This document shows positions 3,001-44,644 of a DNA stretch of 64,000 nucleotides, piece after piece. Each line of letters starts with the position of its first letter. The stretch's first letter is position 1. Below the pieces are notes generated by a model. It was not told where the DNA came from. It did not search any database and worked only from the letters and a program-made list of their open reading frames with translations. Location of the stretch: the sequence record PV654397.1, one strand, 5' to 3'. The translations under genes were made by a program, and so were the position numbers.

Positions 3001-4826
3001 TAGACCTAACAACTTCTGATATTACAGCTAAGAGTTTGTCAGTATCTGAAACTATTCACTCTGATGGTGCAGCTTCCTTTGGTGGTAACACAACAGTAGG
3101 TGGTACATTGGGTGTAACTGGTGCAGTAACTGCTCCATCGGCAACCCTAAGCGGTACTGGTACTGCACTAGCAGTAACTAATAATGCAACTATTGGTGGT
3201 ACATTGGGTGTAACTGGTCAAGCATCACTTGGTTCTATAGTAACTTCTGGTGTATCTGCAACAAGTGGCTCTTTCAGTACTACTCTTGGCGTTACTGGTG
3301 CTGCGACATTTGGAAACGATGTAACTGTAGTTGGAACACTAACTCCTGGTAGCTTAGATCTAACTGGTGCAGATATCTCTGCTAAAACACTAACTCTATC
3401 TGAAACATTAAATGCGACAGGTAATACTACCCTTGGTGGAACATTAGGTGTAACTGGTTTAGCAACAATTGGTGGAACACTAACGTCTGGTGCAGTAACT
3501 GCTCCATCTGCAACCTTGAATGGTTCAGGAACTGGTCTAGCAGTAACTAACAACGCAACCGTTGGTGGTACATTAGGTGTAGTTGGTCAAACAACACTAG
3601 GTTCTGTTAAAACTGGTGCAACTCTAACAGTTGGTACACCATTAGGTGAGCAGCCTGAAACTGTACAGATTATGCCAGACACTTATATTGCTGGTAAACT
3701 ACGTGTTGAGGGTGGTATTAACGCAGATATCGATGTTGGTGGACAAACACTAGAACCGTTTGCAGTAATAGCATCTGATTCTTTATCTTCTGCTGGTAAT
3801 ATTACTGCTGGTGCAGCAATTATTTCAAGTTCTGCAACAATTGGTGAAGTCGGTTCACAAAACAACAACCTAATCGTTAATGGTAACGTTGTAAACAACG
3901 GTAACTTCACTGTTACTGGCGTACTAAATGCACAATTGAACCAAGCAGATTCCGATGTAGCTGTTAAGTCTTTGACTGCAACTAACAACGTAGCTGCTGG
4001 AACCACATTAAGTGCAGGTACTGCAATTACTGCTGGTACTTCCATCACTGCAACTGGATTACTTAAAGGTAATACTTTAGAAGTTACTACTACTGGTTCA
4101 TTTGGTGGTGCAGTAACTATGTCAAGTGGTGCAAACATCACTGGTACAGTAGGTATTACTGCTGGTAACCTAACAGTGGGTGGTGATATCTCTGCAACTG
4201 GCACTGCTGGATTCGGTGCAACAACCGTTTCTACAATTACAACATCAGGTTTGGCTACACTTGCAAGTACATCCGTTACTGGTAACGCAACAGTAGGTGG
4301 AACACTAGCAGTAACAGGAGCACTAACTGCGAATGGTAACGTAACATTAGGTGACGCAGCGGCTGACGTTCTAACCGTTAATGCAACTTCATCATTTAAA
4401 GAAAATGCTGTGTTTGATAAGGCAGTAACAGTAACTGGTGAACTAACCACTACTAATGCTAACTTAACTACTACAACAGTAACTACCAAAAAGTATGATG
4501 TAATCCCAACTCAAGTTACATCATCAGTAATTGCTCCAACCGGAACATGGACTCCAGATGGTACAAGTAACGTGTACTTCATCACTCTAGACCAAGATAC
4601 CACGTTGGCTCCAATTACTGGCCTAATTGGTGGCGGTAAAGCTGCATCAGTATACATCTATGTTAAACAAGATACAACTGGTAACAGAAACTTTACAACT
4701 GATGGTACTTATGCTGTTGTTGATGGTGAACTAAACAAAACTGCTGGTAGCGTGACCATTTACCAAGTAATTTATGATGGTGTAAGTCCAGTTACTGATT
4801 TGTTCATTGCACAACGTACTGCTTAA
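3..4826 (+). CDS. Giant tail fibre/spike-like virion protein, 5' end outside window
   Basis: Frame is open from base 3 (GSFDLDDIQATT...), so 81 is not the true start. Over 1600 aa of G/T/S/V/A-rich beta-repeats with internal duplications and a distinct C-terminal domain. Confidence 0.8.
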   Translation, partial: GSFDLDDIQATTLSVSGASALTGAVTLGANITGLASTATFKAINLGQNTADANVKLGFAYTAPSARPTVLLANEVQSELMSPAKLNVLQTATFGSAALSTYGITGNGLNKLDYLTITGNATQNPATPQLQVGGKAILNDVEFTGTVTGLTVDVSGQDLTPKSVVAAEVIKGQTLESVGQTTVGSSLQVGGAATVTGALSAASGTFSGDVSGSKGIFSDSVSGTSATFTGDVSGDNATFSGDLSAVAGTFSGDVTVTGQTITVKDLVVTGTSTGVTAIADVDGLDIAPNKVDVTTTLSVAGESTLAGVTATSINSTGAIAGTAISGSTITATGEISGASSVVTGLSKSGSVETGALKASSVETAIISNTAGVSITNNTSIAGNLSVTGTVTPGAIDLSTTDIDAKSLTTTEGANIGGDLVVAGTVDLSAADVAVKSLTSTGAVISSEGTVSSVLPKLSSTEANITTVTATTANATTLNVTGTSTLAGVNASGAITSATNITATGVLKGASVETASISNADGVAINNNTTITGNLDVSGTLTPGAIDLSTTDISSKSLTTTEGATIGGDLVVAGTVDLSAADVSVKSLASAETITSAGVITVSDTVNSSTLPKLITTDATIGAVHAATIETTGSSTLKQVSATEVTATSIVLNSVGEGLRVDNNANINGILSVNNITSTNDTIAIAKSAAITGDLTVSGTLTPGAIDLSTTDISSKSLSTTEGATIGGDLVVNGSIDLSSSNVSAITLASSGNTTVGGNLVLTTGVVTGSPSVSGNLSVAGTAAVTGATTLTDIVNIGKKVTVSTGGIQVVAGGINTDAILVSGDTTLNNTTVNTTLNVTGQSTVAALSAASLNVSGDSTVQKLTVEGELVPQGGIDLTGADISANSLATASTITATGLSTLSGGVSTTNVTASGTVNAGSLDVTNNATVGGNLGVTGSLTSGPLSVTGIANITGVTTVGSLVSGAVSGSTGTFSSTLGVTGAATFDNDVTVEGVFTPAGGLDLTTSDITAKSLSVSETIHSDGAASFGGNTTVGGTLGVTGAVTAPSATLSGTGTALAVTNNATIGGTLGVTGQASLGSIVTSGVSATSGSFSTTLGVTGAATFGNDVTVVGTLTPGSLDLTGADISAKTLTLSETLNATGNTTLGGTLGVTGLATIGGTLTSGAVTAPSATLNGSGTGLAVTNNATVGGTLGVVGQTTLGSVKTGATLTVGTPLGEQPETVQIMPDTYIAGKLRVEGGINADIDVGGQTLEPFAVIASDSLSSAGNITAGAAIISSSATIGEVGSQNNNLIVNGNVVNNGNFTVTGVLNAQLNQADSDVAVKSLTATNNVAAGTTLSAGTAITAGTSITATGLLKGNTLEVTTTGSFGGAVTMSSGANITGTVGITAGNLTVGGDISATGTAGFGATTVSTITTSGLATLASTSVTGNATVGGTLAVTGALTANGNVTLGDAAADVLTVNATSSFKENAVFDKAVTVTGELTTTNANLTTTTVTTKKYDVIPTQVTSSVIAPTGTWTPDGTSNVYFITLDQDTTLAPITGLIGGGKAASVYIYVKQDTTGNRNFTTDGTYAVVDGELNKTAGSVTIYQVIYDGVSPVTDLFIAQRTA
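1171..2128 (+). repeat. Three copies of an internal fibre module
   Basis: Identical cccctggtgcaattgacctaagtactac at 1171, 1621 and 2101; protein unit TPGAIDLSTTDI..KSL.TTEGA.IGGDLVV. Confidence 0.9.
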
Positions 4827-4892
4827 TAATTATAATAAAAAAAACGGTGTCATCAATTATGGTGACACCATCTTAACAAGTGAGGTAGTTAT

Positions 4893-5672
4893 ATGTTTAC
4901 ATATGTAAAAGGTAGTTCTAAAGAAAATTATGAATTGGGTAACATCATCTCCAACCCAGTTGGTGTTAAGGGTTTAAAAGAACGCCCTGGGGCAACTCCA
5001 GATGATGAACAAACATATCGTTATTTGTACAGTGATATTCGTGCACTTTATGGTATTTCAAGTAAAGATGGTTCTGAAATTGAACCTAATAACGCTGTTC
5101 GCAAAGAAGAGGGTTTCTGGTGGTTGGAATATAAGAATGTTGGTAATGTGAACGCAATTAATGAGAATTTGGAATATATTAAACTACAAGATAGTAATCA
5201 ACCAGTCATCACATTCTTAGAAGAAGCAGAAGGTGAATATAAAGAGTTAACAGTACTGAAAACTTATAATTATGTTGATATGGACATTGCAGCAGTTAAA
5301 TCTGATCTGAAAGCACGCACAGTATCATCTCGTAGTGATCGTATTAATGCTGGTTATATGTTTAACGGTCATCGTTATAGTACTGATCTAGCTGGTCGTC
5401 AAATGCTTCTTAATTATTATACACAAGTAACTTCCGGTTCTGATAGCGTTTCGATTTTCCTTGATGACGCAATTGTAAAACTATCTGCTGCTGAAATGAC
5501 TCAACTATACACTGAAGCATTTGCTATGGTTGAATCCCTATTTGCAGAGTGTAATAAGCAATGTGCTGACATTGATGCAGTTCCTGATGCTGATGAAGAT
5601 GCAATTTATAAAGCACAACAGGCGGCTGTATGGGTATATGAAGGTATTGATATTCCTGAGCGTACTCGTTAA
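4893..5672 (+). CDS. Tail fibre assembly-like protein, DUF4376-like C-terminal domain
   Basis: Directly follows the fibre gene with a gagg RBS; GYMFNGHRYSTD..GRQ resembles DUF4376. Confidence 0.55.
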   Translation: MFTYVKGSSKENYELGNIISNPVGVKGLKERPGATPDDEQTYRYLYSDIRALYGISSKDGSEIEPNNAVRKEEGFWWLEYKNVGNVNAINENLEYIKLQDSNQPVITFLEEAEGEYKELTVLKTYNYVDMDIAAVKSDLKARTVSSRSDRINAGYMFNGHRYSTDLAGRQMLLNYYTQVTSGSDSVSIFLDDAIVKLSAAEMTQLYTEAFAMVESLFAECNKQCADIDAVPDADEDAIYKAQQAAVWVYEGIDIPERTR

Positions 5673-14190: not shown

Positions 14191-15180
14191 TTATTTGTCC
14201 CCTAGAAATTGTTGATATTTCTTCTGGAGACTTTCGAAAATGTCTTCGACTTCTTCATCGCTTTCATCTTCTAGTTCTTCGTTACCTTCCACAGACTCAT
14301 CACTCTCATTAACATTGAGTGGGTTGTCACCTAGAGCAGTACCTGGGAACTTAGGTTCAAATTTGTGAACACGGTTCTCGTTACCGTCATTGTCATAGTA
14401 CTCTGGTTCAGGACGATTGTCAACATCTTCATCAACGACACGTCTCCAGTAGAACTTGTTACCCTTGGTAATAACAACAAAGTGGTCACCTTCTACACCA
14501 TTAGTTTTAGCTTGACCGTCACGAACGGCATCAGCTTCAGTGTTGTAAGGTCCAAAATCAGTACTGTCACCTTGTTCTTCATCTTCGGAGATGGTTAGGT
14601 CTGGTAGGAAAGTGTTTTCTTCAACTTTAACTTCAGTATCTGGGTTACCTTCTACTGAATATTCATCTTCTGGTTCGTCTTGAAGACCAGCTAGAGATAG
14701 CATACGACTGAAATCGAATTCTTCTTCGATGATTTCTTCTTCTTCCTCTTCTTCAACTGATTCTAGTTGAGGTTGACCGGAAAGATCTAAAGAAAACTCT
14801 TCTTCATCTGCAACACCAGGCTCTTCGAACTCTGCATCCATACTTACTTCTTCAGAATCACCACCAAAATCACCAGCTTCAGCAGATAGTGAGTCAGCAG
14901 CTACTTCCAATGGGTCTTCAACTGGTGCATCAATCGCACCATCCATTGCACCACCAACTTCTTCTTCAGCACCAGCACCAATGGAATCCATGTCGAGTGG
15001 AGCGATTGGTGGTAGAGAAGGGGCCATAGACCCCATAGAAGGAACTGGAGCAGCAACAGGAGAAGCTTGACGCTCTGCTTGACCAGCTAATGCAAGCATA
15101 CGAGATAGTGTTTCTAGATCTTCAGATTCTAGACCTGCGATATCGATTTTAACTTGTGCTTCATTAATTTTTTTAGCCAT
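14191..15180 (-). CDS. Highly acidic protein, putative prohead core/internal protein
   Basis: Very E/D-rich with many I/L/V-x-E motifs. Confidence 0.6.
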   Translation of the reverse strand: MAKKINEAQVKIDIAGLESEDLETLSRMLALAGQAERQASPVAAPVPSMGSMAPSLPPIAPLDMDSIGAGAEEEVGGAMDGAIDAPVEDPLEVAADSLSAEAGDFGGDSEEVSMDAEFEEPGVADEEEFSLDLSGQPQLESVEEEEEEEIIEEEFDFSRMLSLAGLQDEPEDEYSVEGNPDTEVKVEENTFLPDLTISEDEEQGDSTDFGPYNTEADAVRDGQAKTNGVEGDHFVVITKGNKFYWRRVVDEDVDNRPEPEYYDNDGNENRVHKFEPKFPGTALGDNPLNVNESDESVEGNEELEDESDEEVEDIFESLQKKYQQFLGDK

Positions 15181-35083: not shown

Positions 35084-35479
35084 CTACTTGCCCAAATCTT
35101 CTATAATTCTTTTTATGATATCATTGTTTTCCAGACATAAAGTACTGAAATTTCTACCTGTTTTTTCATTGAGTTCATTAATCTCAAGCATAAGATAACC
35201 ATAAGTGATATCTTGGACCCTACTTCGTTTTACCCTTGAGTACAGTCTGATGGGTACAGATACACGAGTATTCAAAAAGAATTCTGATAAATCATAACGA
35301 TATACCAGGTATTCATTCTTGTAACGTTTACGACTGTACGATTCTAAACACTGTGGGAAACGTCTATCAAACATACTACTTCTTAGTTGAAGTGTGATTG
35401 GATCTAACTTATGCGAGAAATACTTTTTGATTATTTTATTAAATCTTGTTACATGTCGTTTACGCCATCTCATAATCAA
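35084..35479 (-). CDS. Basic hypothetical protein
   Basis: 131-aa ORF, ATGA coupled. Confidence 0.65.
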   Translation of the reverse strand: MIMRWRKRHVTRFNKIIKKYFSHKLDPITLQLRSSMFDRRFPQCLESYSRKRYKNEYLVYRYDLSEFFLNTRVSVPIRLYSRVKRSRVQDITYGYLMLEINELNEKTGRNFSTLCLENNDIIKRIIEDLGK

Positions 35480-35919
35480 ACCTTAAAAAATATAATAGGA
35501 AAGTATTTTGTTTCCGAATCTGAAATACTGTTACAGTAATCTTTCAATTCATCATGGATAACATTCAAATGAATAGTAGGATAGTTCATAGGTTTCTGTA
35601 CTGGGCCAGTGGCATATACGCAATCTGTTCTATCCCAACTTACATATTGGGTTGGGTAATTATCTTTAGTACGTTCTTCAATAATAATATTATATTCTGG
35701 TGTATTGAATATATACATATCACATTGTGAAATGTACTGAACATTAAAATCACCGTCAGTGAGATGGATCATGTTCCCATCGCAATATAAGCATGATGGT
35801 TCAGTGTATCCTAAAATTGAAGATAAAGTTCTGAAGTTTGCTCCTGGACCCAAATATACCAAATTCGTGTGTAAACAAATATCAATGAAACGTTTGAAGA
35901 CTTCAGTTTCGTTATGCAT
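35476..35919 (-). CDS. Hypothetical protein
   Basis: 147-aa ORF with RBS. Confidence 0.7.
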   Translation of the reverse strand: MHNETEVFKRFIDICLHTNLVYLGPGANFRTLSSILGYTEPSCLYCDGNMIHLTDGDFNVQYISQCDMYIFNTPEYNIIIEERTKDNYPTQYVSWDRTDCVYATGPVQKPMNYPTIHLNVIHDELKDYCNSISDSETKYFPIIFFKV

Positions 35920-35962
35920 ATAGATACCTTAAAAAGACCCCACATAGTGAGGTCAAACACTT

Positions 35963-36187
35963 TTAAACGTTATCATCATCCAAAGCTTCACGGTACACAT
36001 AATAAACATGCGTACCTAGAAGAACAATGAGTACAATGAATACTAACCAGAATGGTACAAAATGCAGTACAAGTGCAAATGCCATTACGGTAATAACCAT
36101 CACTACTGAACTAAAAATAAGACTAGTAGCTTTTTTAAATCCAGATAGTACATCATTCAAAACGCGTTTCATAAATGAATCAACCAT
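35963..36187 (-). CDS. Small two-TM membrane protein
   Basis: Two hydrophobic segments. Confidence 0.7.
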   Translation of the reverse strand: MVDSFMKRVLNDVLSGFKKATSLIFSSVVMVITVMAFALVLHFVPFWLVFIVLIVLLGTHVYYVYREALDDDNV

Positions 36188-36764
36188 TTTTATTCCTCAT
36201 ATAATCCATATAGCAAGTTCTGCATAGACTCTTGTATGATTCATCACCACCAATAAAGACTTTATCAGTACTTTCAACTATACGGGCATTCATAGTGGCT
36301 TCTTTGCCACACTTCTGATTCTCACACACGTTCTTAAGTTCATGTATGTCATCAGCTATTTCGAACAGTCTTTGTGAACCTTCAAAAAGATTGGATTCAA
36401 AATCTGTTCGTATTCCATAACAGGAAACATCAACACCATAATTATCTGCTATATCAGCTAAATGGTCAATTTGTTCTCTGTTTAAAAATTGACATTCATC
36501 AACATAGATACTGTTAATGTCAACGTCATTTTTGAGTGTTTCTTTAACTTTAAGAAGAACACTAATGTCATTTTTTGGAATTACTTCAGCCACAGCTTCG
36601 ATGCCAATTCTTGAAGTAATCTTTCCTGTTCCATAACGATCATCAAGTGCACTGGTTAAGTAAATTACCTTCATTCCATTTTTCTTATGGTTATATGCTT
36701 TTTGTAAAAGATGAGTACTTTTACCACTAGACATACTACCATAGTAATATACTAATTTACCCAT
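36180..36764 (-). CDS. tdk: Thymidine kinase
   Basis: GSMSSGKS, ITSRIG, VDECQF, YGIRTDF, Zn cysteines C...CG and LCRTC. Confidence 0.96.
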   Translation of the reverse strand: MGKLVYYYGSMSSGKSTHLLQKAYNHKKNGMKVIYLTSALDDRYGTGKITSRIGIEAVAEVIPKNDISVLLKVKETLKNDVDINSIYVDECQFLNREQIDHLADIADNYGVDVSCYGIRTDFESNLFEGSQRLFEIADDIHELKNVCENQKCGKEATMNARIVESTDKVFIGGDESYKSLCRTCYMDYMRNKNG

Positions 36765-37095
36765 TTTTAATCCTTAAGTACGTGTGCTTACATTTTAATC
36801 TATTACCATAGGATGAAATTGGGATATTGAACATTTCTATTTTACCCTCTTTTAAAAGACGTAAAATATCTGGATCGTTTTTGGTTTGTACACAATGAAG
36901 ACCATTGACTTGAATTTCTAAACCATTCTTCAGAAATTCATAAATCTTCTGTCTACGCTTCCCACCGAAACTTTCATTTCGGATAACATCTCTTAGGTCT
37001 TTATATTCTTGTTTTAATTTCCTGTCAAAAAGTGTTCCATCTTTCTTTCTGATTTCTTCAATACACTTATATTGAGTTTGTCCTCTAAGAGCCAT
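36757..37095 (-). CDS. Hypothetical protein
   Basis: 112-aa basic ORF. Confidence 0.7.
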   Translation of the reverse strand: MALRGQTQYKCIEEIRKKDGTLFDRKLKQEYKDLRDVIRNESFGGKRRQKIYEFLKNGLEIQVNGLHCVQTKNDPDILRLLKEGKIEMFNIPISSYGNRLKCKHTYLRIKNG

Positions 37096-37564
37096 ATTTG
37101 ACCTCGTTGGGATATTTCTTCATTAACTCATGTAAACGTTGAATTTCCTGATTTTTCTTATGTTCTTCATCATACTTCTTAGAAAGATTCTTTCTTGTAT
37201 TTGTTTCTAATAATCTAAAATTAGTACAGAATCTATCATTTTTAGCAACGTTCTTACGTAACGCATCAAAAACAGTACTGAAATAGTTATCCAATGGAAA
37301 AGAAGTATCAGTGTAATTATAAAAATCCATTACATTTGTCATGTTCACATGTTCAATTACCGCACCATTGTGCGTTACAATAAACATTATATCACCATAA
37401 TTACAATTTGCATCAGTACGGTACAGATATAAATGATCACGTAAATAATCTTTTAATTTATGTTCAATACCACTTTGTTCAGTACTTTGAAATACCAAAA
37501 CTTCACCATAGATTGTATTACCTTCATAATCATTTGGTTCGCGGATAATTGTAAGGTTATACAT
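37085..37564 (-). CDS. Hypothetical protein
   Basis: 159-aa ORF with ggag RBS. Confidence 0.7.
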   Translation of the reverse strand: MYNLTIIREPNDYEGNTIYGEVLVFQSTEQSGIEHKLKDYLRDHLYLYRTDANCNYGDIMFIVTHNGAVIEHVNMTNVMDFYNYTDTSFPLDNYFSTVFDALRKNVAKNDRFCTNFRLLETNTRKNLSKKYDEEHKKNQEIQRLHELMKKYPNEVKYGS

Positions 37565-39226: not shown

Positions 39227-39667
39227 TTATTGTAAAACTTTGAGTTTGTAAAGCATTCCTTCACAAAAACTCATAATGTCTTCTAGCGTGTTAGTACTGC
39301 CATAGTCTTCAGCCTCTTCTAGCATAGCATGAATGGCTTTACATTGACTAACATATTCTTCAAGAATTGGTACACAATCCTCGATAGGGGTAAAACGATA
39401 ACTGTTACCAGTACCTACCTGCAATGCCCCGCGAGTGTTCATAATACCCTCTACAAATGCATCAACGTACTCAGGTAACTCTTTGTATAGTTCATCCAAT
39501 TGTAGGTGCTTAGTGTAGAAATGGCTCTGTAAATGCCAGTTGTGAGCAGCAGCACTTAAAAATAAACTATTCTCAATAAATGTAAGTAGTACTTCATCAT
39601 AAGAACTATCTTCTTCAGTATCTCCGATAAAGTCCATTACATGTCGTAAATCATTAATATTTTCCAT
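39227..39667 (-). CDS. Ferritin/Dps-like four-helix protein (DUF5856-like)
   Basis: AHNWHLQS.FY.KH..LDELY.ELPE.VD.FVE; YKLK.LQ C-terminus. Confidence 0.7.
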   Translation of the reverse strand: MENINDLRHVMDFIGDTEEDSSYDEVLLTFIENSLFLSAAAHNWHLQSHFYTKHLQLDELYKELPEYVDAFVEGIMNTRGALQVGTGNSYRFTPIEDCVPILEEYVSQCKAIHAMLEEAEDYGSTNTLEDIMSFCEGMLYKLKVLQ

Positions 39668-39697: not shown

Positions 39698-40126
39698 TTA
39701 GTTAATAATAAAGGTAACTTCAGGATTCATTTCTGAAACTGCATTTCTCTTACTTCTATTCCATAGTACTCTATTGTTATATAATGAAGAATCACAAATT
39801 ATAAGTAAGCAATTCCTTAATCTACTTACAGTACTTTGATTACTTAAATCAGTTTCTGTAACAAAAAATACATTATCAGGAACTTCTACAGGAATTGATT
39901 TATCAAAGAAGAAAACTACAATAGGTCTGTTTGTATGAACTAAATTAATAAAGTCTAAAATACTGTTATAAAATTCAGTTCCTTTGTTTAAACTTAATGG
40001 ATCTTTGATTCTCTTCAAATAGGTCTGAACCAAATTATGATCGCTTTTGATTTGATACTCAAAATATTCTTTGAATAACATTTGTGTTAATTCAGATGTA
40101 TTGGATATTTTCGTTGTGTTACTCAT
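39698..40126 (-). CDS. Hypothetical protein
   Basis: 142-aa ORF. Confidence 0.7.
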   Translation of the reverse strand: MSNTTKISNTSELTQMLFKEYFEYQIKSDHNLVQTYLKRIKDPLSLNKGTEFYNSILDFINLVHTNRPIVVFFFDKSIPVEVPDNVFFVTETDLSNQSTVSRLRNCLLIICDSSLYNNRVLWNRSKRNAVSEMNPEVTFIIN

Positions 40127-40264
40127 TCACTTCGTTCTCTCGTAACTCAAGAAGTCACTACGTTTACTTCGTAAACTAGTTCCTTCTGAAAATGATAATG
40201 TACTTTAAAAGCTTGACGGGATTTGTTGAGGACTATTTCATCCCCCCGCAGGGGAATGAAGGTA

Positions 40265-40781
40265 ATAAAAAAGAGACAATTAAGTCTCTCTTGACGATGA
40301 TGGCATCGGATATTATCGAATTGCGAATTTCTCAAATTTTGGACGGATCTTTCCTGTACCAAAATTTAGAGAGCGAAAGCGGGTTGCTCGGTTTCTCTCT
40401 ATCGCAGTCATATGCAACGGTCGCTGGTCTTTTCATCAACAGCACTCAGTACTAAACTCTATTCGATCAAAGTAGTACCTGTTCTCAAATTTTGGACGCA
40501 ACTTTCTTGTAAAATCGCGTCCACAATCCTTGAACTCCCTTAGCAAATTCGTAAGGTGCGAACCTTATACATCTATCTAGGAACTCTCTGTGTGCTTATT
40601 GGAGTTCTTTATACAGCCGTGTCGCCGTGATTCGTGGTCTTATCTCGTGTTTGTTTGATTGCCAGTACTCTAACAGGTTTCTTTTGCTGTTCGCTACAAC
40701 GGTAAAGCTCATCTATCCTTTACATTTTCAAGAGAAGTAGGTTCTCATTATCCATTTTTCAATGTCCGTTGTCATTTTACA
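40265..40781 (-). ncRNA. Candidate large structured non-coding RNA (or structured DNA element)
   Basis: No convincing CDS; promoter at 40788-40815; terminator-like stem at 40264-40292; at least 7 hairpins; about 42% GC versus about 28% in the left flank (hand-counted samples). Confidence 0.5.
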
Positions 40782-40787
40782 ATATAC

Positions 40788-40815
40788 ATTATATCACTAG
40801 GATGTATTATGTCCA
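40788..40815 (-). promoter_or_regulatory. Sigma70-like promoter firing into the non-coding region
   Basis: TGGACA-16-TATAAT with extended TGn. Confidence 0.7.
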
Positions 40816-40816
40816 G

Positions 40817-41230
40817 TTACATGTATACCTTTTTCAAATCCTTGGAACAACGGTCAAAAATTGTGTTGATGAATTCGACATCCTCTTTGATATTGGAGTC
40901 TATAGCATCATTCTCGTTTCTTGTCGTGTTCCTGTATTTGTGTTCAGGGTGATTGTATACCACCTTGACTACATTATTTAGGTCTACAAAAAATGACGAT
41001 TTTTGCGTATAGGAAGCCTGAAGCTTAATGAGTTTACCATCGTTTTGTAGATTAGTCTTGTGAATTAGTTCTTCAATACCATCTAAATGGCTATAGCTAT
41101 CCTGTTCTTTGACGAATGTAACAGTTACCAGTACTGACTTCTCATCTCCAAAGTCAGAGATATTTTTAACAGCACTGATGATTTCTAAGTTTGAAAAATC
41201 TAATTCTTTTAGCATTACAAGTATTTCCAC
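40817..41230 (-). CDS. Hypothetical protein
   Basis: 137-aa ORF. Confidence 0.7.
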   Translation of the reverse strand: MEILVMLKELDFSNLEIISAVKNISDFGDEKSVLVTVTFVKEQDSYSHLDGIEELIHKTNLQNDGKLIKLQASYTQKSSFFVDLNNVVKVVYNHPEHKYRNTTRNENDAIDSNIKEDVEFINTIFDRCSKDLKKVYM

Positions 41231-41625: not shown

Positions 41626-42237
41626 TTAATTGTGATTATTCAATTTCTTTTGTTCTTTTTTTAGAGCTTTCATATGTCGTCCAAAATCACGAACATGCCA
41701 TATATGGTCGGTTTCCCATAGTTCTGTACGTAAACGGCGTTCTTCCAATTCTTCTGGAGTAGGAATTTTAGATTTCTTCTTATCTTTATTGAAAAAATCA
41801 TTCATATGTTCTTCCAGTAGATTTCTACCCTTAACTTTTTCCAGGAATTCATCTACTGATTCAGTTTTATTAGAACGAAGACTGTTACAACGTGAACACA
41901 TGGTGTTGTAATTTGACTCTAAATCAGGTCCACCCTTAGATGCTAGTTGGTTATGATCTACTGTCATCAGTACTTCATATAGACCACAAACTGCATAGAC
42001 ATTTAAGTGAGGTTTACCATATACCGGATCAGTGCTATGTGAACGCTCAATGCGAACTTCAGTAGCTTCAATGCCACACGCAACGCATTTGCAATTCTTA
42101 ACGAATGTCAGTACTTTTTGTGGGAAGTATCGGAAAGTAACACCGTTATATGTATAGCGTTTCATCTGTGTACTTCTTTGATTTAACTCATTAAGAAGTG
42201 ATAGTTTGGCAACATAGTAGACCTGATATTTTGACAT
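41626..42237 (-). CDS. HNH endonuclease
   Basis: CVACG, TVDH, SKGG, N...MCSRCN..RSN. Confidence 0.85.
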   Translation of the reverse strand: MSKYQVYYVAKLSLLNELNQRSTQMKRYTYNGVTFRYFPQKVLTFVKNCKCVACGIEATEVRIERSHSTDPVYGKPHLNVYAVCGLYEVLMTVDHNQLASKGGPDLESNYNTMCSRCNSLRSNKTESVDEFLEKVKGRNLLEEHMNDFFNKDKKKSKIPTPEELEERRLRTELWETDHIWHVRDFGRHMKALKKEQKKLNNHN

Positions 42238-43405: not shown

Positions 43406-44644
43406 TTATTTTTTACTGTACCATTGCATTTCACGGATATCTAATAGTACCTTCGTAGCCAACTTTATGTTTGGTTTCTTCGGTAGATGGGTCTTATGAT
43501 ACGCCACATTTCGGATGTAGTCAACCTTTTCGTTGAAATAATCCATAACTTCTTGATACAACCACTTCCCGTTACGAATGTCCATCAACATAGCAGCATC
43601 CGGTCGGTGAACTTGGATGATACCAGTTTCAAGTGCTTCCTGTGCTGTATTCAGCAGCCTGATTGTATGCATAGCATGTTTGCAGTCATAACCGTGGTGT
43701 GATTCAAGAATAGCACGTTTGGCATTACGATTCTGCTTCCATTTGTGATAACTCTTACGGTTCTCACTATTTTCTTTGTATTCCTTTTCATTGAATTTTA
43801 CAATGAGTTCAGGACGAACTTTCAATTCTTCTGTAGTACGTTCTTTGTTGAAGTAACGTAGTGAACCATCAGCATTCACTGTACTTTCATTCGGGTTGAT
43901 AATTACCCCAAAGATGTTTTCACCGTAATGGATTAGTTCATACCCTGAATTGTAATTCAATAAATTGAAATCACGATCTAATACTTTATCAGTACTATAA
44001 TTATGTACTAAACGTACAAAATGATATTGTTTCAATGCTTGTGTTGAAACTAATTGTAATGAAGTATCACGCATGTATTTTTCAAAATCAATTTTTGTAG
44101 CATTGAATGGGTGAAGATTGGATTTATTCAAACGGTCAACCAAATACTGCGGGAATGTATCATACATCCATGAAAGTACTTCGTCAACTGGATGTTCTTC
44201 TAAAATTTCATTTAGTTTACGTTCAGCAATTCGTTCCTTATCGAGCCAGCCGTGGTGATTAGACATACGCTTAACCTGATTGTATGCATATCCACTGTAT
44301 GAGTGTGCAATCTTTGAACTCAATAATTGCTGATTGAATGAGCGTAGATAGTCATAGATTTCAGTACTTTCTACGATGTGTTCCGGTTTAACCCATAGTG
44401 ATTCAAGAATGTTTGGGTTAGCTTCAGTATACAGACTTAAGTACTGATTGATTTCATAAAATTTAGTATCTTCTTCAGAAGTATCTGAAACTTCCTTAAC
44501 ATTAAAAAAAGGAGTTAGGATATATTCTTTGTTTGCAAGGAAGATACCACGATAATCTGTATCACTTTCTGGTGTGCTTGTGCCATACGCCTGTGAACCA
44601 GCTAAGTGTTTCACAATAGTTTGTTCTAGAAAATTGTTTTTCAT
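43406..44644 (-). CDS. Pol-beta superfamily nucleotidyltransferase (COG3541/RlaP-like)
   Basis: GSQAYGTSTPESDTDYRG, NPNILESLW, YDCKHAMHTIRLL, L.DIRNG. Confidence 0.88.
   Translation of the reverse strand: MKNNFLEQTIVKHLAGSQAYGTSTPESDTDYRGIFLANKEYILTPFFNVKEVSDTSEEDTKFYEINQYLSLYTEANPNILESLWVKPEHIVESTEIYDYLRSFNQQLLSSKIAHSYSGYAYNQVKRMSNHHGWLDKERIAERKLNEILEEHPVDEVLSWMYDTFPQYLVDRLNKSNLHPFNATKIDFEKYMRDTSLQLVSTQALKQYHFVRLVHNYSTDKVLDRDFNLLNYNSGYELIHYGENIFGVIINPNESTVNADGSLRYFNKERTTEELKVRPELIVKFNEKEYKENSENRKSYHKWKQNRNAKRAILESHHGYDCKHAMHTIRLLNTAQEALETGIIQVHRPDAAMLMDIRNGKWLYQEVMDYFNEKVDYIRNVAYHKTHLPKKPNIKLATKVLLDIREMQWYSKK

Follow-up and report, generated by a model that had tools for sequence, protein, structure and literature searches.

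What does a gap of about 690 bp, without any apparent gene, contain in the otherwise densely coding genome of a jumbo phage? A preliminary description, made from sequence alone, had proposed that it encodes a large structured non-coding RNA with its own promoter and terminator. To address this question we analysed the gap within its surrounding window, the whole 64,000-nucleotide stretch of record PV654397.1, and compared it with phage, metagenomic, plasmid and bacterial sequences. The window belongs to an Asteriusvirus (121Q/PBECO4 group, 350-kb genomes), the region being 100% identical to Escherichia phage WPEC5 and 95-100% identical to about 30 other phages of this group. Overall, the observation proved to be real, with the gap holding the gene of an intricately folded RNA of roughly 520-575 nucleotides that is read from the minus strand and matches no described RNA family.

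Transcription signals and lack of coding capacity

The gap (40127-40816) lies between two minus-strand genes (40817-41230 and 39698-40126) and contains no credible ORF, the longest being 87 aa on the plus strand and 71 aa on the minus strand. All six frames carry 5-18 stops in every family member examined and most indels are not multiples of three, whilst the short CDSs annotated over the region in some GenBank records are not conserved, so that the outcome named beforehand as fatal to the RNA reading, a coding region, finds no support in the sequence. GC content rises to 0.41-0.42 inside the element, compared to 0.25-0.28 in the left flank. On the minus strand, a near-consensus sigma-70 promoter matches 11 of 12 consensus positions and carries an extended -10 element, and it is conserved in all of the 51 or more copies examined. 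A hairpin followed by a U-tract, with the sequence UUUUUAUU after its AGAGAC/GUCUCU stem, is present at 40292-40264, as had been proposed, although a simple terminator scan missed it; all five of its stem pairs show compensatory changes in relatives. The locus thereby fulfils the definition of a sigma-70 promoter and intrinsic terminator transcription unit, with a core of about 515 nt between these signals, but the terminator is optional across the family, being absent in about 15 of 51 members. A profile search with nhmmer found a single copy in the window, at 40773-40209 on the minus strand. The features of this copy, all on the minus strand, are as follows.

40810-40815 (-): -35 element TGGACA, for which the family consensus is TG(G/A)AAC(G/A).
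40788-40796 (-): extended -10 element TGATATAAT, separated from the -35 element by a 16-nt spacer, with TATAAT at 40793-40788; the transcription start is inferred, not mapped, at about 40783-40780.
40264-40783 (-): terminated form of the RNA, about 515-520 nt, from promoter to intrinsic terminator.
40552-40734 (-): 5' domain, with helices P2 (40734-30/40720-16), P3 (40708-06/40695-93), P4 (40690-86/40617-13), P4a (40676-73/40628-25), P5 (40607-02/40586-81) and P6 (40567-63/40556-52), and pseudoknot PKa, pairing 40622-20 with 40571-69.
40482-40523 (-): optional module, copy 1, hairpin GGACGCGAU...GUUGCGUCC followed by AAAAUUUGAGA.
40316-40479 (-): 3' core with nested pseudoknots; hairpin P7 (40472-69/40460-57) has a loop (40466-61) that pairs with 40321-16 (S2), and the other helices are P8 (40444-42/40424-22), X (40418-14/40387-83), Y (40406-02/40326-22), Z (40399-95/40379-75) and W (40372-70/40332-30).
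40334-40367 (-): optional module, copy 2, inside helix W.
40290-40307 (-): last hairpin H1 (GAUG 40307-04 / CGUC 40296-93), whose 3' strand is motif 1, CGUCAAG (40296-90).
40264-40292 (-): intrinsic terminator, with AGAGAC (40289-84), a 6-nt loop, GUCUCU (40277-72) and a U-run (40271-64).
40237-40260 (-): G-rich hairpin UUCAUUCCCCUGCGGGGGGAUGAA, with a nearly invariant 3' arm, GGGGGGAUG.
40212-40218 (-): motif 2, CGUCAAG, a second copy of the 3' strand of H1, marking the end of the conserved element (about 40209).

Conserved fold and the 3' module

A search for homologues with compensatory changes had been named in advance as a test of the RNA reading, and its outcome was strongly in favour. 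Alignment of nine copies (A1) revealed an invariant extended -10 promoter, about 200 invariant core positions and helices kept by double changes, one example being GAACUC/GAGUUC, which appears elsewhere as GAAUGC/GCAUUC, GAAGUG/CACUUC and AAGCG/CGCUU. RNAalifold on 23 distinct copies (A2) gave 72 pairs, of which 40 had compensatory changes, with about 197 positions invariant across genera even though the flanking genes no longer align at the DNA level. ATAAT of the -10 element is invariant in A1 and A2. Pattern scans then added 22 IMG/VR loci, 68 metagenome loci and four bacterial genome loci, and on 51 non-redundant copies, at most 96% identical to each other (A3), we curated 17 helices with 72 pairs, including three pseudoknot helices. 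In A3, TATA-T is invariant, with the fifth position A in most copies and C in a few. Within this alignment 95.3% of cells are paired, compared to 79.3 ± 0.3% in shuffles and 35-46% when partners were slid by 1-3 columns; 50 pairs have changes on both sides, 581 cells are compensatory (about 150 in shuffles), and the covariation score is 0.49 (0.18 in shuffles, 0.05-0.09 in slid controls), with 0 of 500 shuffles reaching the observed values. As the helices were selected on the same alignment on which they were scored, these statistics are somewhat inflated, and no covariance model was built, but the margin is very large. The MFE z-score is -4.1 on the minus strand and -2.5 on the plus strand.

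G-U pairs outnumber A-C pairs 326 to 60, so that the structure is 95.3% paired on the minus strand and 88.0% paired on the plus strand, which, together with the conserved promoter, settles the strand. The preliminary description had left open a bidirectional RNA or a DNA cruciform or origin, a hedge that is not supported by the strand statistics. Similarly, a purely DNA-level element (cruciform or protein-binding array) or a decayed protein gene, to which the inverted repeats and the elevated GC content could have pointed, is refuted by the strand-specific G-U pairing, the pseudoknot covariation, the conserved promoter and the stops in all frames of every member.

The RNA begins with a variable 5' hairpin, followed by the 5' domain, in which PKa joins the P4 internal loop to the strand before P6, all six pairs of P5 covary and four of five pairs of P4 covary. 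The 3' core is the most conserved part of the element. Here the loop of P7 pairs with S2, a strand 140 nt downstream, this pairing is stacked on helix Y, which encloses helices Z and W, and helix X (GUUGC/GCAAC) crosses both Y and Z. Helices X, Y and S2 are 100% paired and carry 3-5 covarying pairs each; Z also has several compensatory pairs and is compensated again in XaC1 (GGAAG/CUUCC) and RaK2 (GGACG/CGUUC). A peripheral module of about 30-45 nt (...ACAnnAnAGnUnCGUCCAAAAUUU...) explains an internal direct repeat of the window (40329-58 and 40482-511, 27 of 30 identical) and occurs 0-2 times per family member at two alternative insertion sites. Of the seven stems initially listed, three match helices supported by covariation, with 40581-40607 corresponding to P5, 40552-40567 to P6 and 40237-40260 to the G-rich hairpin. 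Of the remainder, 40368-40400 largely coincides with Z, 40493-40523 and 40334-40367 are the two copies of the optional module, and 40162-40176 lies outside the conserved element.

The conserved unit does not stop at the terminator, as had been assumed, but runs about 55 nt further through the G-rich hairpin and the repeated CGUCAAG motif. The G-rich hairpin is present in all copies, including a divergent 'type 2' subfamily from metagenomes, and its 5' arm varies between C and U whilst keeping G-C or G-U pairs, as expected for pairing in RNA. About 20 nt further on, motif 2 appears. Motifs 1 and 2 are identical to each other in each of five variants: CGUCA in most copies, CGACA in Serratia sp. 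2723, UGUCA in two metagenomic phage copies, CUUCA in the RaK2 group and CGAAG throughout type 2, where the 5' strand of H1 has also switched, to UUUCG, so that pairing is kept with all bases changed (UUUCG/CGAAG). No conserved internal complement to the CGUCA motif exists other than the 5' strand of H1. The simplest explanation is that this strand can pair with either copy, which would allow a local hairpin in the terminated RNA and a long-range closure in the read-through RNA; this step is inferred from the identity of the two motifs rather than from direct evidence, and in L109, one of the four bacterial genome copies (L107-L110), the register differs. Two other pairings were rejected. A long-range pairing of GAUG (in CAGAUGAG) with motif 2, proposed by RNAalifold, does not follow the motif variants, and a second hairpin between GAUG in the tail of the G-rich hairpin and motif 2 fits type 1 and partly fits L109, but fails in RaK2 and type 2.

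Distribution in jumbo phages and integrative islands

That the element is one of about four paralogous copies per genome, and is carried by bacterial islands, could not have been seen from the window alone. At 65-71% identity, a stretch of about 480-530 bp was found in every other RaK2-like jumbo phage in the collection searched, spanning phages of Klebsiella, Salmonella, Erwinia, Yersinia, Cronobacter, Pectobacterium, Serratia and Xanthomonas, such that 72 of 72 RaK2-like records carry it at 3-5 separate places each. The complete 121Q genome holds four copies: A (247.4-248.2 kb, the orthologue of the window copy), B (326.6-327.2 kb, between the endonuclease VII and baseplate hub genes), C (192.8-193.3 kb) and D (90.3-90.7 kb, just after an RNA polymerase sigma-factor gene). 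All four lie in gene-free gaps of 0.6-0.85 kb, share the same absolute orientation and have a GC content of 0.40-0.41, in a genome of 0.34; C and D lack the terminator. Positions are conserved between genera, with the B context recurring in Serratia phage BF, Salmonella phage 7t3 and Escherichia phage EJP2, and the D context in RaK2.

Full-length homologues (nhmmer E-values 1e-74 to 1e-82) were found in four bacterial genomes, the Serratia fonticola GTA-SR07 chromosome, Serratia sp. 2723, Silvania hatchlandensis and an Enterobacteriaceae MAG, and full-length copies also occur in 2 of 5426 complete E. coli genomes, whilst none was found in 72,556 plasmids. In each case the RNA lies beside the integrase end of a small integrated element, but these elements differ. 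One has a large serine recombinase plus two ParB/RepB-like genes, two have a CI-like S24 repressor, with a serine recombinase in one and a tyrosine integrase in the other, and in E. coli LR-29-1 the RNA sits in a 10.7-kb island next to ffs that also carries the candidate defence system PDC-M45. The three serine recombinases are only 26-28% identical to one another where they align, and an otherwise similar island has a tyrosine integrase instead, so the link is to integrative islands in general and not to large serine recombinases as such. No island protein has a homologue in 121Q or the window, and no partner protein co-occurs with the RNA. In a tree, island copies interleave with phage copies, copies from Mimasvirus and Eneladusvirus group by type across genomes, indicating old paralogy, and the four 121Q copies group loosely together.

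This distribution bears on several alternative explanations. A cis-regulatory leader, giant riboswitch or processive antiterminator could be suggested by copies A, C and D of 121Q, where the RNA points the same way as the downstream genes, by the absence of the terminator from C and D, and by the terminator that follows a large folded domain in the window. However, copy B and all four bacterial genome copies (L107-L110) converge on the next gene, leaving nothing downstream to regulate, and motif 2 lies after the terminator and cannot influence termination, making this reading very unlikely.

A mobile or intron-like element (an ORF-less group I or II intron, an IS200/605-type miniature element, or an omega-RNA scaffold working with the nearby HNH gene) might be proposed from the multiple copies, the ribozyme-like size, the short direct repeats (CGTCAAG) flanking a hairpin and the HNH genes within 1 kb of copies A and D. 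Against this, the element lies between complete genes in different contexts rather than interrupting one, has its own promoter and occupies stable positions across genera, and its two repeats change together, unlike a target-site duplication. The link to the HNH gene raised in the preliminary description is not supported. HEARO or omega-RNAs of IscB, IsrB or TnpB lie directly next to an effector ORF (RuvC and/or HNH, about 350-500 aa), whereas the nearest HNH protein here has 203 aa and lies two genes away, the HNH genes near A and D are not adjacent and lie on different sides, g416 next to copy C is not an HNH protein, and no HNH gene lies next to the element in the contexts examined from other genera. 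No transposase, IscB or TnpB is annotated in 121Q. These readings are largely refuted.

The main rival is a cis-acting, RNA-primed replication origin, in which the structured transcript, like ColE1 RNA II, would fold so that its G-rich 3' part forms a lasting RNA-DNA hybrid that is processed into a primer; the four copies would be the phage's origins, and islands would carry a copy so as to be replicated by a helper jumbo phage. ColE1 RNA II is about 550 nt, is made from a sigma-70 promoter by host RNA polymerase, depends on its fold, has a G-rich segment and needs no element-encoded protein. Consistent with this view, the element is of similar size (about 520-575 nt) with a sigma-70 promoter, a G6 run lies near the 3' end, several diverged copies are kept at conserved positions per 350-kb genome, all in one orientation in 121Q, and copies sit on 4-10-kb integrative islands in which no replication gene was recognised. 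The promoter also belongs to the 'divergent RpoD-like' class (-35 TGAAACG) that was found mostly upstream of DNA-synthesis genes in phage CBB (PMC5259590), the family consensus being TG(G/A)AAC(G/A), about 17 nt, then TGnTATAAT, which the island copies keep. However, about 200 invariant nucleotides and nested pseudoknots represent far more constraint than R-loop origins are known to need, and the present RNA is far more conserved than RNA II and is pseudoknotted. R-loop formation, primer processing and support of plasmid replication were not assayed; no R-loop evidence exists, no conserved antisense promoter of the RNA I kind was seen, and the absence from plasmids argues against an origin driven by host enzymes alone. 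Cumulative GC skew of 121Q shows no inflection at the four loci, although this test is weak for phages and was uninformative. A T4-type origin (oriF/oriG), in which a promoter is followed by an AT-rich unwinding element, does not fit, as the element is richer in GC than its surroundings and the sequence after it is not unusually AT-rich. An RNA II-like origin, which also fits poorly with the high GC content and the absence of an unwinding element, is considered unlikely, though it would neatly explain the copies at fixed places and their presence on small islands.

A role in defence or counter-defence is a plausible but doubtful sub-case of a trans-acting RNA, suggested only by context. In this view the phage RNA would bind or neutralise a host factor, or would be essential to the phage, with islands expressing a variant copy as a decoy or sensor that interferes with infecting jumbo phages. 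The island copies keep the phage-type promoter, lie next to the integrase in islands with a CI-like repressor, a membrane protein and, in LR-29-1, PDC-M45, are rare and interleave with phage copies. There is, however, no known precedent for this RNA, and the proteins tested from the islands of L108 and L109 gave no defence hits in PADLOC.

Interpretation and comparison with described RNAs

The proposal of an undescribed, independently transcribed, structured minus-strand phage RNA of about 515 nt is supported by our analysis, subject to the corrections on strand, 3' extent and the HNH gene given above. We regard as demonstrated that the locus (40815-40209, minus strand) is a conserved, promoter-driven RNA gene whose product folds into at least 17 helices, three of them pseudoknot helices, around many invariant unpaired nucleotides, that in this copy an intrinsic terminator defines a form of about 515 nt from a start near 40781 (itself inferred), and that it is one of about four old paralogous copies kept in every RaK2-like jumbo phage, with relatives on small integrase-bearing islands in Enterobacterales. 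What we infer goes further: read-through would add the G-rich hairpin and motif 2, giving a form of about 570 nt in which motif 2 can probably replace motif 1 as the partner of the same 5' strand, so that the 3' end could take two alternative pairings, and the folded RNA itself would be the product, free-standing and acting in trans during infection as a ribozyme-like or protein-binding scaffold, possibly self-assembling and perhaps a multimer as found for GOLLD and ROOL. The promoter class suggests that it is made by host RNA polymerase early or in the middle of infection, and in this reading it is not an mRNA, a leader of the downstream gene or a DNA site. No transcript has been observed for any member, we found no RNA-seq data for RaK2-like phages in literature searches that were too broad to be useful, function is untested and the molecular target is unknown. 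Acting in trans is likewise an inference, since several diverged copies at fixed positions, all in one orientation in 121Q, plus a copy on small mobile islands, fit a cis-acting element equally well. We assign a probability of about 0.6 to this reading as a whole, and above 0.95 to the RNA gene alone.

A more far-reaching possibility, which we regard as tentative, is that this is a new class of catalytic or self-assembling RNA, in which the four diverged paralogues build or act as a ribozyme-sized machine with a 3' strand-exchange switch that is essential for infection, copies of which small chromosomal islands have captured to parasitise or block these phages. An equally novel alternative is a protein-independent, RNA-structured replication origin shared between jumbo phages and their satellites.

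An Rfam search, also named beforehand as a check, gave no family assignment. Of 4227 Rfam 15 models, including group I/II introns, RNase P, tmRNA, 6S, GOLLD, ROOL, OLE, HEARO, raiA and self-cleaving ribozymes, none reached its gathering score anywhere in the window, only scattered chance hits at E 3-9 fell in the region, and none hit the RNA in 12 diverse members; intron, HEARO and ribozyme models gave no hit even at E<=10. ARAGORN detected no tRNA or tmRNA gene in the 64-kb window. Searches of PMC and bioRxiv found no description of this RNA, which appears to represent an undescribed class of large structured RNA.

GOLLD and ROOL RNAs are likewise several hundred nucleotides long, elaborately folded with pseudoknots, free-standing, carried by phages or prophages and without known function, and their cryo-EM structures show RNA-only multimers (10.1101/2024.12.08.627333). 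The present RNA is comparable in size, complexity and phage association, although its oligomeric state was not measured. It shows no sequence or structure match to them, its hosts are Enterobacterales jumbo phages rather than Lactobacillales or rumen taxa, and it occurs as about four diverged paralogues per genome, with no tRNA genes in the window. In the immunity RNA of satellite phage P4 (CI RNA), one sequence (seqB) has two identical complementary partners (seqA and seqC) on the same transcript, which co-vary between related elements, and this RNA also occurs on a small integrative element. It is, however, about 70 nt after processing and acts by causing termination, whereas here the repeat is a 5-7-nt strand at the 3' end of a 550-nt RNA with motif 2 after the terminator, and there is no homology. 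In the related jumbo phage PA5oct, RNA-seq defined four ORF-free transcribed regions of 236-619 nt (ncRNA001-004), two of which make up 2-5% of phage reads (PMC7318152); nhmmer found no sequence homology for ncRNA001 and ncRNA002, the two that were compared, ncRNA003 and ncRNA004 not being included.

Few large bacterial or phage RNAs with ribozyme-like complexity are known, among them RNase P, group I and II introns, tmRNA, OLE, GOLLD, ROOL, HEARO and raiA, and each has opened a line of research. The RNA described here is supported by unusually strong covariation, is kept in about four copies in a whole group of therapeutic-candidate jumbo phages, and sits in well-studied, culturable E. coli phages (121Q, PBECO4, phAPEC6 and others) in which it can be tested directly at the bench. 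Its presence on integrase-bearing islands, one of which carries a candidate defence system, suggests a link between phage RNA biology and mobile-element conflict. The finding also corrects annotation, as many GenBank records place 2-6 'hypothetical proteins' over this locus.

Internal repeat, gene annotation and neighbouring genes

Within the window, we identified a 30-nt internal direct repeat (27 of 30 identical), a peripheral RNA module of unknown role that family members carry 0, 1 or 2 times at two alternative insertion sites, with a tertiary contact being one possibility. The CDSs annotated over the RNA locus in many GenBank records are almost certainly false gene calls; their frames are not conserved even among close relatives. 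Neighbouring genes were named from their 121Q orthologues, and none is linked to the RNA in other copies. The features concerned are:

40329-40358 and 40482-40511, the two copies of the internal direct repeat
40201-40356 region, 121Q gene 516, with 4-6 'hypothetical proteins' annotated over 40100-40850 in WPEC5 and others
39227-39667 (-), a Dps-like 'starvation-inducible DNA-binding protein'
41626-42237 (-), a free-standing 203-aa HNH endonuclease
43406-44644 (-), a 412-aa nucleotidyltransferase

Bacterial islands carrying the RNA

In E. coli LR-29-1 (L112; NZ_AP027515.1, 3473.2-3483.6 kb), a 10.7-kb island is inserted beside the ffs (4.5S RNA) gene, and carries an IS3-disrupted tyrosine integrase, the RNA, a membrane protein and the candidate defence system PDC-M45 (DUF488, a dual-OB protein and DUF4326). 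In the Serratia fonticola locus (L110), two tandem rof (Rho-inhibitor) genes (4775-5490) lie next to the island, whereas the related metagenome contig L040 has one. The duplication may mark the integration site.

A divergent subfamily, an unannotated phage gap and ORF-free phage transcripts

Eight metagenome contigs (L055, L060, L064, L083, L085, L093, L094 and L104) represent a divergent 'type 2' subfamily of the RNA, in which motif 2 is followed by a further conserved stretch of about 110 nt that includes the hairpin GUGCUGCUAAAGCAC. No cultured phage carries this type. One contig encodes a Thg1-like enzyme, which may point to a large phage.

Outside the window, a gap of about 2 kb with no annotated gene was observed in phage 121Q (135194-137161 of the record; 35194-37161 of the 121Q segment L009), in a region of many tiny ORFs. 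This is the largest unannotated stretch seen in 121Q, and a profile search with the RNA family across all collected loci listed no copy there. In the related jumbo phage PA5oct (L111), ncRNA001 (764-999) and ncRNA002 (14452-14902) are highly expressed ORF-free transcripts that are GC-rich and not homologous to the present family, and so may be further undescribed phage RNAs.
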